A stretch of DNA of 64,000 nt from positions 434,001-498,000 of the forward strand of contig CM052849.1 in the NCBI GenBank assembly GCA_028534125.1, read 5' to 3'. The position numbers and the translations under genes were made by a program. This DNA is from Lama glama. Its lineage: Eukaryota. A model generated the notes under the pieces. It ran no database searches, was not told the DNA's origin, and saw only the letters and a list, made by a program, of their open reading frames with translations. Positions 5,629-54,794 of the stretch are shown here, piece after piece (the stretch's first letter is position 1; each line of letters begins with the position of its first letter).

Positions 5629-5764
5629 GGTGGGGAGAGTATAAGTCAGTGGTAGAGTGCATGCCTAGCATGCACAAGGTCCTGGGTTCAATCCCCTGTA
5701 CCTCCATTAAAAAATAAATAAGCCTAATTACCTACTCCTCTAGCAAAAATTTTTTTTTAAATGA
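5629..5764 (+). mobile_element. tRNA-Ala-derived SINE (vic-1-like, camelid) with a 17-bp target-site duplication
   Basis: tRNA-like head 5632-5706 with A box (TCAGTGGTAGAG) and B box (GGTTCAATCCC), then an AT-rich tail. Exact TSD AAAAATAATTAGGTTTA at 5612-5628 and 5765-5781. Confidence 0.88.
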
Positions 5765-8943: not shown

Positions 8944-39533
<30,590 letters not shown>

Positions 39534-40669: not shown

Positions 40670-40736
40670 ATGCCAGCCCATGACGACCTGGGCAGAAACC
40701 CCACCGTGGGCTGCCCTCGTCCGAGCCCCCTGGCAT
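40670..40736 (+). promoter_or_regulatory. SECIS element
   Basis: Helix I ATGCCAG (40670-76) pairs with CTGGCAT (40730-36). Core ATGA at 40680-83 with GA at 40723-24. Helix II GAC..GGGCAG/CTGCCC..GTC. Apical AAA at 40696-98 with a CCCAC/GTGGG mini-stem (type 2). Confidence 0.93.
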
Positions 40737-41850: not shown

Positions 41851-44800
41851 CGACTGCTGTCACCTGGGCCACCGTGGGGCCTTGCGCTGGTCTTTCCACG
41901 TGCAGGGAGGGGGACCACTGGAGCAGGGTTGCAGACCCACACTTCCCTTGCCCAGGCCCTCTGCCCCACACTTAAGGAGGGGCCGTGAGCTTGTGTCTCA
42001 GGTGTGAGTCAGCATGGGGAGCAGGACATGTGCATGCCCTGGGCTGCATGGAATTCTCTCTTGCATATCCCTCGGGACTCCCTGGCTCCAGGGTCACTAC
42101 ATGGTCACCAGCCCCCTCTCAGGGCCCAGCCATGCCCAGTCCCTCCTCCCAGATAGCGTGGAGAGGGGCCAGAGCCCCACAGGCCAGGTGCTCTCCACCT
42201 GGGCCCAGGGCCGCCTTCCTGCGCCTTGGCATGTTTTTATGGTGCAATGAAAATATGATTTTAATTCCTCAAATTGTTCCTTGTAACCTACAATTACCCC
42301 CGACGTCCTGTGCTCATCGCTTATGGCTCTGATTGCGCAAGAAAGTGGGGCGGCTGCTGCTGGGGGCAAGGCCCACCCCTCCCCTGCCTCACCCTCTTCT
42401 GGGAAACCCTCCAGCCACCAACCCCGCCTTCCTCCAGCCCCCTGAGGCCCCTAGGAGGGCAGATACTCAGGGAGGGTGACCAGTCCTGGAGTGCTGGACT
42501 GCAGACTCAGCCTGGTCCCCCTGCACACTTTGCACAGGCTGCTGGTGCCCCCCAGCCTCTCCTAGCTTTGCTGGATGCATAGCAGGGAACACCCCTACCG
42601 CCATACATGCCAGCCACGCTTTCACGTGGCTGGAGGCCCAGCTGAGGAGGTGACCACAGTGCCCAGCCAGGGGCCCTCACAGGCGGAGTTGCCCCATGAG
42701 AAACTGGCATCAGGTGGTGCCTGCAGGTCAGGGGGTCTGTCCTGTGGCCTCAGGTCTGGCTCACCTCACCTGGCCCAGGCAGCAGCTCAGGGTACCCTGG
42801 CCCCAGCACACTCCCCAGGGTTGGGCCTGAGCCCCTCACCCACCGCTCACTGCTGGATGCAGAGCTGCCAGAGCCCGTGGCCCAGGGCCCCACAAGAGGG
42901 CCACCCTGAGTGGACCGGACCATGTGCTGGTTCAGAGACCCAGGGCCATCAGGCCTGCTCAGACTCCGGGTGCCCAGCCCACCCTGGCCAGGGGCCCCTT
43001 GTGGGGCTTCACTGCCCAGTGCTCACGCTGCGCACATTCTTACAAGTCCATGTGAGAGGCTCCTCTGTGCTGGCCAGTCTGAGGCAGGAGCCCCAGGCTG
43101 TTCCCACTTGTGCCTGCCCTGTTCCCCTGCCATCCGCCCAGTGCATCTGCTTAGCCGGCAGCCGCCTCGTGTAGGGAGCGGGCTGACTCCCCCAGAGCTT
43201 TGCCCAGCTCCTGCTTCCTGGGCTTTCATGGAGCCCCAGGTCCTCCTTGGGGGTCACCAGCACAAAAGACCCTCTCCCAGGACTACAGGCAGTAAAAGCA
43301 GCCCCTGTAGCCTTTGGGCTGGCCTGCACTGCCTCTGCCTCCTCCCACTGCTTTCTACCCTCTCCTGGCCCTCCCCCCACCCCCACATCAGGTCTCCCCA
43401 GGGCTGCAGGAGAGGTCTCCCAGAGCCAGGGGGCCTCATGGGACAGCACCTTGTGCCCTGACCTTGCTTTGTTCTTCCCCCATCGGAGCCCGCTGTGCTC
43501 TCTCTGGATGCTGAGTGGCCCTGGGAGCTGCCTCAGGTCCTTTCTGTACCAGGCAGGGGCATGAACACTGGCCTGGCCCCCTGGAACAGAGCAGGAGGGA
43601 TGAGGAGGGGCAACTGGAACAGGCTCTGCGCATCCCAGGCCTGTCTGCACACCAGCCAGGGGAGGTGCCTGACACTGCTGGCTAGTGTCTGCTGGGCCCT
43701 CTCCAGGTAGAAGGGGCATTGCCCAGGCCAGGAGTCCCAGTTCCAACAGGGCTGGATCGTGGAGGGGTTGGGCTGCCAGGAGCCTCCCTGGGAGAGCCTG
43801 GGGAAGGAAGGAGGCACACAGGCACCTTTGGGGCAGGTCCAGCCAAAAGTATCTGGCTTTGGAGACAACGAGACAGTTCTGAGATTCTTCTGCCAAGAGA
43901 CTGATAACTGGGAGACACGAGCTCACGCGTACAGGCCACTCTGATGGTGCACACGTCCAGCTGGGGGTCCCCAGGGGCAGGGACAGGGCCGGATGATGCC
44001 AAGAGGGACGGCCTGGGCTCCCATGCCCAGCACTCCAGCATCGCTGCCAGGCCCACCTCCCTGCCCAGCAGATGTGGCCAGAGTTACCACTCCCTGTTCC
44101 AGACCCGCATGACAGGGAAGCTACCCTGACGGCACCTGGGCAGCACCCCTTCTGGCTGGTGCCATGGTGCGCTGGGAATGAGAGGGACAGAGGCTGTGTG
44201 CCCGCCCCCAAGTAGCCTGGGCCCGACAGGAGGTTGAAGCCTGCTTCTCCTGACACGCTGGGAGGGAGAAGACTGTTATACAGATGCTGCTTCTTAACCC
44301 GCAGGAGCGCGGTCACACGTGACAGGTGGGCGGCCTTCAGACCTGGGTCTGCCGTCTGTGGAGCAGCACGGCCAGGGCCATGCTGCTGAGCAGGCCTGGC
44401 CAGCCGTCCTCTCTCCCCCAGGCCCGGTCTTTCCTGCGGCCCAGCTTCTGGAGCTCTCGGGTTTCTGGTCCCGCCCCAAGGACTCAGGGAGCCCTGCGTG
44501 TCCTGGGCCCCAGCCAAGCACCTGTGCCTCCCCAGGGCCCTGCAAAGCATCTTAAAGCTGAGCTCCCCTAATCCCAGCCTGACGTGGTTTATGGTGCTCG
44601 GGTGTCCCTAATCCCGAAACCCAAGCAGGGTCCCAGCAGCCATCCCAGCGCCATCCAAGTGGGCAGGAGGAGGACGCCGTCCCTCGTGTGCCTGCTGTTT
44701 AGAGCTGGCCCCCACCAGGGACAGGGCAGGGAGCTGGGCCACAGGGTGAAGATCTCTGGAAACTGTGGAGGCCTGGCGGGTCCTCTCCAGCCTCTACCTG

Positions 44801-49700: not shown

Positions 49701-50149
49701 TTTTGATGGCCTGGCCCAGTTTGATCAAGGTTTAGCACAAGCCTGCTGCCCACTCTCTGCTAACCACACTGAGTTGCCCTGAGCTGCCAAACTGTCGGCA
49801 ACTCCCCCTCTCCTTTGAGGCAAGGAAGTTTAAATTATCAGGTCAATTAGGGAAGACACAACCGAAAAATACAAATTTCACTCACTTCCAGAAGGCGCTT
49901 CCTGGCTGGGTGCCACTTCTAGCATTTTTGGCTAGGCAGCTGAAAGCCCCGCAGACCCTGAGAAGATACAATGTAATCGTTGATTCGTTTCGATGATCAA
50001 AGCGAGTAAGTTTGGGTGTAAATGCAGATAACATTTCAGGGATGGTTTTATGAAAGGAGTCGCTAGACCAGGGCAGAAAGGGAGCTGGTGTTAACATCAC
50101 TTCCAGTGACCTCTGCCACCTTGGTCCTGGTAACCCTCCCCGACCTGGG

Positions 50150-51350
50150 GTCCCCGAGGCACGAGGTCCTGGGGTGGCTTCCCCCTGCTGCGTGGGCACC
50201 GCGAGAACGCGGGGCGGAAGCAGGGGCCGCGCACGGAGGGCATCAGCTCCCCCGGCACCGGCCTTCCTAGTGTCGGGGTGCAGCCTCGCTGGGTGAGCGG
50301 CGCCCACGGCGAGGGAGCCGGGCCCACAGGGGACAGTCTCCGGGCCACCCTTCCCTGTCGCTCCTGGGCGGCAGGTGCGCAGCCCGGGCCCCAGGCAGGT
50401 CTCCAGCGAGGCGCACTCGGCGAGCACACCGGCCGGTGAGCGCTGTAGCCCCTGAGTGACCAACCCTGTCTGGTGCCCTCGGCCCCCAGCACCCCTCTTG
50501 ACGCTCAGAAGGAACTCAGGGCAGTGACCTGGGGTGAACCAGGTGGGCGCCACAGCCACTCGTCAGTTAACCAGCCCTCAGCGCCAGGCCTCGCCTTGCG
50601 CCTGCGCGCGCGGCCCCGCCCGCCGGACGGACACAGCCCTCCCCGCGCCTGCGCCTGCTCGCGCGGCCCCGCCCTCTCTCGGGGCACTCGGCGCGGCGTC
50701 GGGCCCGGCGCGCTCCCATCGCCCCCCGCGCCACACTGCCCCGCTGTCAGGGCTCGGAAGCGCCTGCGCGATCGCGTCCCCAAGGCGCACGGCGCAGGCG
50801 CGGCTCGGCCGGTAGCCCAGCGTGGGGCGAGCCGGGGTCCGGCGCGGGAACGTACGGGACGGCGGCGCGCACGCAGGGGGCGTGGCCGCGCGACACGGCC
50901 GGCGGAGAGTCGGGCTGCTCTCTCCGGGCGTCGTTAACTGCGGCCGGAGGGTCAGTGGGGCAGGGTCTCCGCCTTTCGGTCCCTTCCTGACTCCCGGTCC
51001 GCGCCGGGACTGTGCGCTTCGAGCCTCCTACCGGGCCTGGCGTCGCCTCACGGCGGCCGGTCTCGTCCGCTTTGTAGGTGCGCTCGGGCTCGCCGTCGAG
51101 GGAGCCGGGCCGTCGTGGCCGGACCTTGCGCGGCCGCAGGTAAGTGGGCTTCGAGCCGCGGCGCGTGACCCCTGGCCCGCGGGTCCGAGTCCGGGTCGGG
51201 GTCGCGGGAGCACACTCCCCCTTCGGGGGATGGCTGAGGACCCCGCTCCCTGAAGTAGCGAGAGCTGGGCGGGTCCGTCCTGGGAGGGAGGGCGTCGGCA
51301 CGCGGGCGCGCGTGGTCAGTCACCACCTCACCTCGCGGATGGCAGGAGCG
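50150..51350 (+). promoter_or_regulatory. CpG-island promoter of GNB1L/RTL10
   Basis: Dense CpG; several NRF1-like GCGCCTGCGC/GCGCAGGCGC motifs (~50597, 50645, 50760, 50792); synteny with RTL10 just downstream. Confidence 0.85.
51000..51139 (+). other. GNB1L: GNB1L/RTL10 non-coding exon 1 (5' end approximate); no GNB1L coding exons found in the window
   Basis: Consensus donor CAG|GTAAGT at 51139/51140 inside the CpG island. Identity rests on the conserved order COMT-TXNRD2-GNB1L/RTL10. Confidence 0.6.
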
Positions 51351-51380
51351 AGAGTGGTTCGCAGTCATTGCTTTTTCCAG

Positions 51381-51463
51381 AGCTCGGTGAGGAACTGGAC
51401 TGGGCTTGGCAGTGGACAGCATTCACTCGTGTGCTGTCTCTTTGGCCACTGGTGCCCTAGCAG
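51381..51463 (+). other. GNB1L: Probable GNB1L/RTL10 non-coding exon 2 (3' boundary uncertain)
   Basis: Strong acceptor ttgctttttccag|AG at 51380. Donor ambiguous (51463 or 51556). Confidence 0.4.
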
Positions 51464-52971
51464 GTGTTTTAGTGTTAGGATGACACGGGCTTTCAGGTCG
51501 AAGACCCCCCAGGGTGGGGGGTGTATCTGAGGTTCCAGAAAGCCTAGGTGGCCGAGGTAGGTGCTGGGGGCTCCTGTGGCTCCGAATGCTGCAGGCTACC
51601 CAGAGAAGTGCTGGGTGGAAAGACCAACAAGCCGTGCCTTCCCGGAGGAGCTCCCATGGTGGGGATAGGTAAACAGGTAGGAAGCTGCCCCGAAGGTGAG
51701 TGCAGACCGGTGCCCCTAGGTAGGAGTCAGTGGAGCCTTGGGGTATTTGTTGAGGGGGGGATTGTTGGTAAGATCGCACAAGGGGTGAGTGAAGCCTCTG
51801 TGGAGGCCACGAGTGGACCTCTCGTTGCAGAGAGACTGGCGAGATGGCTCCCCTCAGGCTGAACAGTGGGAGGGCTCCTTGCACTGGAAGGGAACCTTAC
51901 CTCCCGACCTACAGCCTCCTTTACTGTGTCTTTGCCTCTTTGGGCCACTCAGCGGTGGTGATCACTGCTCTCCAGGCCCTTTGCAGGGGTGATTTTGGGG
52001 CAGTGAGAGTACACAGTGCAAGTGGGATTTAACTTGGGGGATCAGGTGCTGGGCTGTTGGCAGGGATGGGGATGCGGGGAGCTTATTTGAGGTGGGGGTG
52101 GCTGCACGCTGGGTAGTGAGGTGAGTCTCAGAAGCCTGGGAGAAGGCAGGCAGGTGGCACCTACACTGTCACGGTGCTGTGATGTAGAAGGCAGTCATGA
52201 TGCCGGCAGTGTTCTTAGCGGTGCTGTGTTTGGGGCGGTTGGGGGATGGTTCAGAGGACAATGAAGTCCGTAACTGGCCTGGTAACGCGTGGTGACGTGT
52301 GTGGTCTCTAGAGCCGGGTCAGCTGCCTCCGCCACTTGCTAGTTGGTGTGTGGCTGCAGACAAGAGATTTCACTCACCACTCTGCTTCAGGGTGGTAAGA
52401 GTATCAGCCTCGTCCTCGTCGGGGTCAGCGTTGGGCATGAATAGAGCGTTCAGTGAATGGGTTACTGTTGTTATCCTTCTCCTGAAATTCCCCAACAGCC
52501 ATCCAGGCTGTCTGGGGAAGCCCAGGGGCTTCTGGTCTGGCCCCTTCCTTTTCCTGGGACTGACATCACTGACATCACATCTGGCTCTTACAGCATCACA
52601 GGTGGTGTTTGCCACCTTCTCAGGCCTCCCAGCCTTCTCCCACTCAGAGCTCTGGGTGGGGTGCCCAGGTTGGCCCCCTGTTGCCCAGTGGTCATGGTTG
52701 GGCCTAGTTCCTGCTCTTCTCACCTTGTTTTTGGACAGATTGCCTTGGATGGTGGCCTGCATCTGACAGTCCCATCGCTCCTCTCTGCTCTTCTGAGGCC
52801 GCAGCTGTCAGCCCTTCAGCGCTTGCATGGAACGCCAGGGTTTGCCACAGCCTCTCCAGCCACCTCTGTCCTGTTGTGTCCCGTGTGCCTTCTGCCCACC
52901 CTGCCTGGACGTCTCTTCCTTTCTCCTCTTCCTTCGCGCAGTTGGCGGGGCAGCTTGTGCCTGCTTCCAGC

Positions 52972-54209
52972 ATGCCTCAAGGCTGGTGCCGTCGGCAGGG
53001 CCCTCGCAATCCTATCTGGGTGGCAGCCAATTACGCCAGTGCATGCCTTTGGCAGCAGGTGGATGGGGCCTCTCCTGGGGTCACACATGCACCATTGGTG
53101 GATCTCTGGATCGAGCAGCCCTGCTGTGGGGACCTTGTGTGCGTGCGCACAACCACGGAGCAGATGAGCACAGCGGGCCCTGCTCCTGGCGGTAAGCCTA
53201 CAGAGAGTGGGCCCCCAGTGATGCGCATACTCTGCCCATGGCCCCCTCTGGGTGGACTTCCACTGGGTGCCCGACTCAGACCCAGGCACCTTCGATGGTT
53301 CCCCTTGGCTGCTGAACCGCTTCTTGGCCCAGCTGGGTGATTTCATGTCCTTCCACTTTGAGCACTACCAGGACAACCATGCCAGCCCTTTGGGCTTGAT
53401 TCTTGTGTGATACCTGCCTGGACCCCTGCCTCAGTGTTCACCACGTGTAATCTCTGTCCTGTGGGCTGGAAATTAAGGAAGGCTGCATGGAGGAGGCAGC
53501 TCCTTTCATTATCCAGTGTGAGGTTCTTGGGCGCCTGATGGGCCAGGCCTGGGCGTGGGCAGCCCCCTAGCTCAATGGGGACCTGCCCTTGCCTGACAAT
53601 TGTGAGCTCTTTTGCCAGGATCCTGAGGAAGTTATTTAAGCCCTGAACAACTTCGCTGAGTACCACGCTGCGGTTCCCCACCTTTTGACTCCGGCCTCGA
53701 GCCAGCCGCCCATAGCCCCGCAGCTGCCTGTGCTAAGACAGTACTTAGCTCGGTTCTCTGAGGCCCTGGCACTCAACGTGGGCTCTCCTCCCAGGCCTGT
53801 CCCAGCTGCTCTGGCCACCTCTGCTGTTTGTAGTTCTGACTCCACATCCAGAGATGCTCTGTCCAAGCAGCAGCTAGCCACGGAGAGCAGCCTTAGGCCC
53901 GCGGAGCCTCCTACCTGGTCCAGTTCTGCATGCAACACCGTTCCTGGTCCTGGGGGGTCAGCTTCCTCCCAGCCAGGGGTGGTGGCCTCCAGACTTCCCT
54001 GCCCTTACAGAGTCTACTAAACCCTCTGCCCAGAAACCAGGTCCCGCTCACCCAAGGGGTCCAGAACGCCAGAAAACACAGGAGGTCTCTGAGACAGAGG
54101 GAGACCAGGAGGCACCCTTAGGTACCCCACAGAGGGCAGTGGACGCCTCGGAGACCCCAAGAGAGCCACCATGTCCTCCCGTGCCCCAGCCCACAGCCCT
54201 GGATTCTGA
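52972..54209 (+). pseudogene. RTL10: RTL10 (C22orf29/BOP, retrotransposon Gag-like 10), disrupted
   Basis: [22 protein letters not shown]... then, across frames, [105 protein letters not shown] and [14 protein letters not shown]...SPGF*. These are collinear with recalled human RTL10. Likely acceptor at 52738. Confidence 0.88.
53377..53522 (+). repeat. 146-bp direct repeat, copy 1 (inserted in the RTL10 CDS)
   Basis: Identical by eye to 54649-54794. Confidence 0.95.
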
Positions 54210-54648
54210 ATGTGCAGGTACAGCAGTGCCCTCTCATGATGAAGTGGCCTGCATAGCCAAGGAGCCCCCAGCCCCCTGTCAGGACAGTGGCATTGCCAGA
54301 TGACTGTAGATGTAGCACCAGGTGTCTCTCTGTACACTTGCCCTGTTACTGGGCATTGGTGCACCTGTCTGAGCATACACGGCTCCTTAGCACCACACCC
54401 CCAGCACAGGAGGACACTGGCCTCTGTCCTGCCCCTCAGGCCCCAACTCCCCCAGTGGCCCAGAGGCTGCCTCCCCCCCAGCTCTCAGCTACATCTTCAC
54501 ATCTTATTGGGGAGTGCCGTCTCACCTGGCCTGTTCCCACTGGTCGATCATTTCCCCACCTGCTATTTGTACTGTCCTTGTGACTGTCTCCCTCCTTCCC
54601 CCCCAAAACTGACTTCCTTCCATGCTGGCTGGGACTGGACTGGGTCTG

Positions 54649-54794
54649 CCATGCCAGCCCTTTGGGCTTGATTCTTGTGTGATACCTGCCTGGACCCCTG
54701 CCTCAGTGTTCACCACGTGTAATCTCTGTCCTGTGGGCTGGAAATTAAGGAAGGCTGCATGGAGGAGGCAGCTCCTTTCATTATCCAGTGTGAG
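54649..54794 (+). repeat. 146-bp direct repeat, copy 2 (presumed donor, RTL10 3'UTR region)
   Basis: Identical by eye to 53377-53522; offset 1272 bp. Confidence 0.95.

Follow-up and report, generated by a model that had tools for sequence, protein, structure and literature searches.

The question raised by this locus is whether the forward-strand interval 52972-54303 of the window (by which we mean the whole 64-kb stretch of GC-rich mammalian DNA analysed here, with one run of Ns at 20789-20952) still encodes the protein RTL10/BOP, or whether only the remains of that gene are left. RTL10/BOP (C22orf29) belongs to the SIRH/RTL family of domesticated Ty3/Gypsy Gag genes. The initial annotation of this DNA, made from the letters alone, had proposed a disabled gene. 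According to our analysis, 52972-54303 is very probably the orthologous, single-exon RTL10/BOP coding region, located at its native position and now a pseudogene.

Identity and genomic setting of the locus

An exhaustive phmmer search with the N-terminal block of the locus (52972-53241) against 1.84 billion representative proteins returned 23 matches. Their cluster names include "Protein Bop [Saguinus oedipus]" (KAK2107391.1; P0003), "protein Bop [Castor canadensis]" (P0038, an intact protein of 379 aa) and "human C22orf29", a low-quality model (P0012), in agreement with the identification proposed initially. Two further relatives with uninterrupted reading frames were found in Logan assemblies, P0002 (396 aa) and P0029 (301 aa, cut by the end of its contig). 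The DNA is not human, as the identity of the N-terminal block to every full-length relative found was 56-67%, the lowest value (56%) being that to the tamarin protein P0003, the single primate among them. The window matches intact relatives, the named beaver Bop among them, colinearly and from end to end, provided that three changes of reading frame and read-through of two in-frame stops are allowed; the frameshift-aware alignments then give 64% identity over 376-391 codons (64% over 376 codons for the beaver protein). The locus differs from a typical RTL10/BOP gene in that its frame is broken at five places and no single piece of it reaches a Pfam match.

Some of the phmmer matches require comment. 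P0018 is spurious, as it is a bacterial repeat protein. The first 33 of the 96 residues of P0021 are what we take to be a human- or ape-like sequence, and the remainder, an unrelated sequence, possibly reflects a spliced isoform; P0021 was excluded from all comparisons. The tamarin Bop is only 210 aa long and appears to be read out of frame past about residue 170, which could be due either to an assembly error or to a loss in the tamarin, although primates reportedly retain RTL10.

The Pfam domain DUF4939 (PF16297) was detected in residues 98-177 of P0002 and 93-178 of P0029 (36.9 and 38.2 bits, respectively, against a curated cut-off of 29), and both proteins also gave a weak match to Ty3_capsid. 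These matches fit the derivation of RTL10 from a Gag/capsid gene, as described in two publications (PMC11011659, PMC11299033). A Pfam scan of the five scannable pieces of the window (22-126 aa; a 17-aa piece was too short) gave no match; the capsid pieces of the window are nevertheless 71-89% identical to the DUF4939 domain of the relatives. PDB sequence searches with two pieces of the window and with P0002 gave no match, and none of eight window open reading frames (ORFs) was present in the protein collection by exact look-up. A word search with the N-terminal block and the 122-codon ORF was also blank, which for this eukaryotic query is not evidence of absence: from that very collection, exhaustive searching recovered a dozen relatives whose length qualified. 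One scan each of viral contigs and of metagenome contigs for RTL10 loci yielded no relatives, the patterns used for the metagenome scan being ones that the window's own capsid block also matches. The AlphaFold2 model of P0002, based on a 9-row alignment, had a mean pLDDT of 35, too poor for a fold search.

The genomic context supports the same identification. In other mammals, RTL10 lies downstream of TXNRD2, and in the window the RTL10 remnant was found in the expected position, on the same strand as TXNRD2. TXNRD2 was searched exon by exon; its active-site exon, its last coding exon (best PDB match: mouse TXNRD2, 1zdl, E 1.4e-18) and its SECIS element were checked and are intact, so that the earlier description of this gene as error-free stands for these parts. 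Exons of GNB1L were not recognised between 54.3 and 64 kb by a heuristic based on splice sites and ORFs. A CpG island lies 1.5-3 kb upstream of the RTL10 ATG and is likely to be a shared promoter region; immediately before the coding exon, a polypyrimidine tract with an AG at 52940-41 resembles an acceptor site. The features of the region are presented in Table 1.

Table 1. Features of the RTL10/BOP locus and its surroundings (positions refer to the window).
Feature	Position	Strand	Remarks
TXNRD2 active-site exon	15784-15927	+	Intact
TXNRD2 last coding exon	39405-39524, then TGA-GGT-TAA to 39533	+	Ends Gly-Cys-TGA-Gly-stop; intact
TXNRD2 SECIS element	40672-40734	+	Intact; 12 kb upstream of RTL10 ATG
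CpG island	50001-51500		GC 0.68-0.77; CpG observed/expected 0.6-1.0
N-terminal RTL10 block	52972-53241	+	ATG frame; residues 1-90 of P0002/P0038/P0029, 62-67% identity
C-run with one-base frame change (lesion 1)	53242-53246	+	Intact relatives switch from ATG frame to frame +1; placed at 53239-53246
First capsid-like (DUF4939) block	53246-53377	+	Frame +1; 86-89% identity to intact relatives
BH3-type 12-mer	53312-53347 (LAQLGD 53324-53341)	+	Frame +1; inside first capsid-like block
Inserted segment	53377-53522	+	146 nt; 100% identity to 54649-54794
Second and third capsid-like blocks	53517-53636	+	Frame +2; separated by in-frame TAG 53568-53570
In-frame TAA	53637-53639	+	Near C-terminal edge of capsid-like domain
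Proline/serine-rich middle region	53640-53975	+	Frame +2; 65-72% identity to P0002, P0029, P0036, P0037
Last frame change	53976-54006	+	Frame +2 to ATG frame; at 53982-53996 by different relatives; frames overlap at 54004-05
C-terminal block	54004-54303	+	ATG frame; stop 54301-03; aligns to C-termini of P0002, P0037
Donor copy of inserted segment	54649-54794	+	1272 nt downstream of the copy in RTL10; flanks of the two copies unrelated

Reading frames and disabling lesions

The reading frames were compared with those of P0002, P0038, P0029 and P0037 by tblastn and by a custom frameshift-aware protein-to-DNA alignment, and the four references agree on each lesion within their span. With P0002 and P0029, tblastn delineated colinear blocks at 52972-53244 (ATG frame, 66% identity), 53243-53377 (frame +1, 87%), 53517-53975 (frame +2, 68%) and approximately 53995-54300 (ATG frame again), with E-values of 1e-48 to 1e-58. 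RTL10 blocks thus occupy all three forward frames, as had been noticed in the initial annotation. The 3' limit given there, 54209, was wrong: the homologous frame extends as far as the stop codon at 54301-03. The C-terminus of the window corresponds to the longer form seen in P0002 and P0037, whose frames extend beyond the human-type stop, as opposed to the human form of 364 residues; P0037 and the window share their last five residues (...SGIAR).

The ORF starting at ATG 52972 has 122 codons and ends at TGA 53338-40. In comparison with the four relatives, a one-base change of frame was found in the C-run, and both proposed stop codons, TAG and TAA, lie in the frame homologous to that of the relatives. 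The second frame change, noted initially near 53990-54003, falls within 53976-54006; protein alignments do not resolve it to a single base. Besides the five breaks, the frameshift-aware alignments required a few in-frame differences in length. Four of the five lesions, namely the C-run change, the insertion and the two stops, are located within the DUF4939 region or at its edge. The reading frame of the capsid-like domain is not open in the window, considering two frame changes, the insertion and two stops.

The BH3 motif of human BOP comprises residues 114-125 (PMC9171138). The BH3-type 12-mer of the window is identical to it in 10 of 12 residues, and it lies in a frame that is not reached from the ATG; the earlier statement that the capsid-like block and its LAQLGD motif are out of frame with the ATG is thereby substantiated. 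Programmed frameshifting was considered as an explanation of the frame changes and was ruled out by the in-frame stops and the insertion. The limit of RTL10 homology at 54303, the donor of the insertion and the match to the C-run in another sequence (P0006, see below) are additions to what had been noted before.

The 146-nt insertion and its donor

The insertion had been annotated as 146 bp at 53377-53522. This extent was reproduced as a perfect direct repeat, both by BLAST against the window and by a repeat search, and the inserted length had to be corrected. The RTL10 homology breaks off at 53377 and is picked up again at 53517, so that a stretch of about 130-139 nt at 53378-53516 lies outside codons and interrupts the capsid-like domain. 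Approximately 139 nt have taken the place of 12 nt (four codons), a net gain of 127 nt, and 7 of the 146 nt represent microhomology at the junctions: 1 nt on the left and 6 nt (TGTGAG) on the right are common to the target and the donor.

A templated insertion is recognised by an identical sequence close by that could serve as donor, by microhomology at either junction and by the loss of target bases, and all three were found here. We infer that the segment was inserted in a microhomology-mediated, templated event that deleted 12 nt of the target, through repair or template switching. It resembles known insertions of this type (template switching or synthesis-dependent end joining) in its exact donor, which has the same orientation and lies at a distance of 1.27 kb, and in its junctions and target deletion; in the present case the junctions point to this as the probable mechanism. 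The exact identity to the donor is also compatible with a local error of assembly; such an artefact is less likely, because assemblers need far longer overlaps than 1 nt and 6 nt.

No differences were found between the two copies over 146 nt. At a neutral rate of 1-2.2e-9 per site per year, this corresponds to an age of roughly less than 5-10 My. Since it is an exact copy of nearby DNA, the insertion must have arisen long after the C-run frame change, which is shared with a related sequence, and it probably landed in a gene that was already dead. The five lesions described initially are all present in the sequence, and the exact copy warns that they are not of equal age. A clean germline templated insertion with readable junctions is also the point of wider interest at this locus. 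The possibility that the insertion serves as a new intron was examined and rejected: its 3' end is acceptor-like, but the sole in-phase donor site, at 53405, is a weak one, and the two stops would in any case remain downstream.

Age of the lesions, constraint and loss of RTL10

Across the capsid blocks (83 residues), the window and beaver Bop agree at 69 positions, whereas intact relatives are identical to beaver Bop at 81 and 79 positions (Fisher p = 0.003 and 0.02, respectively); in other words, the window has 14 differences, as opposed to 2-4 between intact relatives. In the disordered middle region, divergence is about equal in all pairs. An excess of divergence in the capsid blocks together with an evenly diverged middle region is what a lost constraint on the domain predicts, and this amino-acid comparison points to relaxed selection on the capsid-like domain in this lineage.

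These data also bear on the proposal that the locus is still used, whether to encode a short N-terminal protein (the 122-codon ORF), to produce a non-coding RNA or to contribute to the 5' region of GNB1L. The ATG, the 122-codon ORF and the upstream acceptor-like site have survived, the CpG island is still present upstream, and the mouse has an annotated product of 146 residues, a comparable short form. In Henriques et al. 2024 (PMC11011659), mouse RTL10 is described as frameshifted, knockouts are reported nevertheless to show phenotypes, and a non-coding role is raised. A residual role of the locus as a short protein or a non-coding transcript may be envisaged by analogy. However, the N-terminal block shows 62-67% identity here, compared with 74-85% among intact relatives (Fisher p = 0.0006), N-terminal fragments from other species carry frame changes of their own (P0005, P0011), and an ORF of 122 codons is unremarkable in DNA of 60% GC. 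We therefore consider continued use of the locus unlikely.

The proposal that the animal carries an intact gene and that the lesions are errors of sequencing or assembly is less plausible still. It is true that the first frame change is located in a homopolymer run, that the insertion copies a neighbouring sequence and that the assembly has at least one gap, the run of Ns mentioned above. Against this, the five lesions fall into three kinds, and two of them are substitutions to stop codons; the junctions of the insertion are too short for joining by an assembler and typical of repair, the capsid blocks have diverged in excess at the amino-acid level, and no error was seen in the TXNRD2 exons examined.

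Another argument against sequencing error comes from P0006, a 68-residue ORF that lies on an independent Logan contig and is, among the relatives found, the closest (82% identity to the window). It tracks the ATG frame to approximately 53226 and then, colinearly, the third frame over 53232-53312 to the same stop. As deduced from this colinearity, its DNA has the same length across the C-run as the window, one base more than the intact genes. The Asp-to-Asn change in the BH3 12-mer is also common to both, and P0006 has in addition a length difference of its own just upstream. Because P0006 has the same DNA length there, the C-run change seems to be inherited and not a slip of assembly. Judging from this one 68-residue fragment, it appears to predate the split between the two lineages, whose divergence, estimated from amino-acid differences at about 6% at the DNA level, would suit a split of the camel-llama type. 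The C-run change is the only lesion of the window that is mirrored in independent sequence data. The earlier view that poor sequence quality is an unlikely cause is thus upheld, by the two substitutions, the C-run in P0006 and the drift of the capsid blocks. The statement that five lesions had accumulated is likewise upheld as to their presence, with the reservation that their ages differ.

A duplicated or relocated copy, with a functional orthologue elsewhere in the genome, is very unlikely: nothing positive speaks for it, the position downstream of TXNRD2 is the expected one, and the upstream sequence is homologous to that of fragments P0004, P0005 and P0033, which fits a native exon and not a retrocopy. 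Within the 64-kb window, tblastn found no second RTL10-like locus.

The reading that best accounts for the data remains that of an RTL10/BOP pseudogene at the ancestral locus, where the alignments to intact orthologues and the synteny with TXNRD2 place the disabling lesions. In the sequence of events that we propose, a host gene of Ty3/Gypsy Gag origin would have lost purifying selection on its capsid-like domain in this lineage, and would afterwards have gained the one-base frame change, the two stops and the second frame change; the templated copy from 1.27 kb downstream would be a recent step. Translation from the ATG cannot yield a product containing the capsid-like domain or the BH3 motif, and we infer that the locus has no remaining protein function. 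A further reading, which we consider improbable, is that the loss in this lineage was an independent event (separate, if the DNA is camelid, from those in pigs and ruminants, since cetaceans keep the gene according to PMC11011659) and that the 122-codon ORF or its transcript retains a role, as suggested for the mouse; the locus would then provide a natural test of RTL10 function without the capsid and BH3 parts.

The initial annotation had regarded the locus as a case of lineage-specific gene loss. The gene is indeed disabled here, but the loss is not a special event. According to PMC11011659, RTL10 coding capacity has been widely lost in mammals: the ORF is intact in only 3 of the 18 mammals surveyed (cow, sheep and pig being among the 18 genomes), and retention under purifying selection is limited to primates, basal glires, cetaceans and some bats. 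The pseudogenes described in that survey resemble the present one: frameshifts and premature stops have destroyed the capsid frame, and the locus has been kept. Frame changes of their own were also observed in fragments from several other taxa (P0004, P0011, P0013, P0014/P0035 and P0017), and the lesions of such fragments differ from those of the window, with the exception of the C-run change, found in P0006 and possibly in P0011. In the light of this survey, the kind of event is already described, and the present case is real but ordinary.

It adds one more carefully mapped example to the published pattern, in which no other domesticated capsid gene is lost as often in mammals as RTL10. For annotation, it follows that no RTL10 protein should be called at 52972-54303. 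Upon comparison with sister genomes, the locus could also help to date the loss in the clade.

Two other features of the window were observed. On the reverse strand, a stretch of 532 codons at 43009-44607 is free of stops and contains a 513-codon ATG ORF (43009-44550). It is longer than any stop-free stretch in 200 shuffles of the region that approximately keep the dinucleotide content (mean 206, maximum 386). Its translation, rich in Gly, Pro, Ala, Leu and Ser, has no match in Pfam, NCBIfam or PDB and is absent from the protein collection by exact look-up; the stretch may be due to chance in GC-rich DNA. On the forward strand, 5635-5706 gives an Rfam tRNA match at the gathering score (29.1 against 29) and no ARAGORN call, and probably represents the head of a tRNA-derived SINE.
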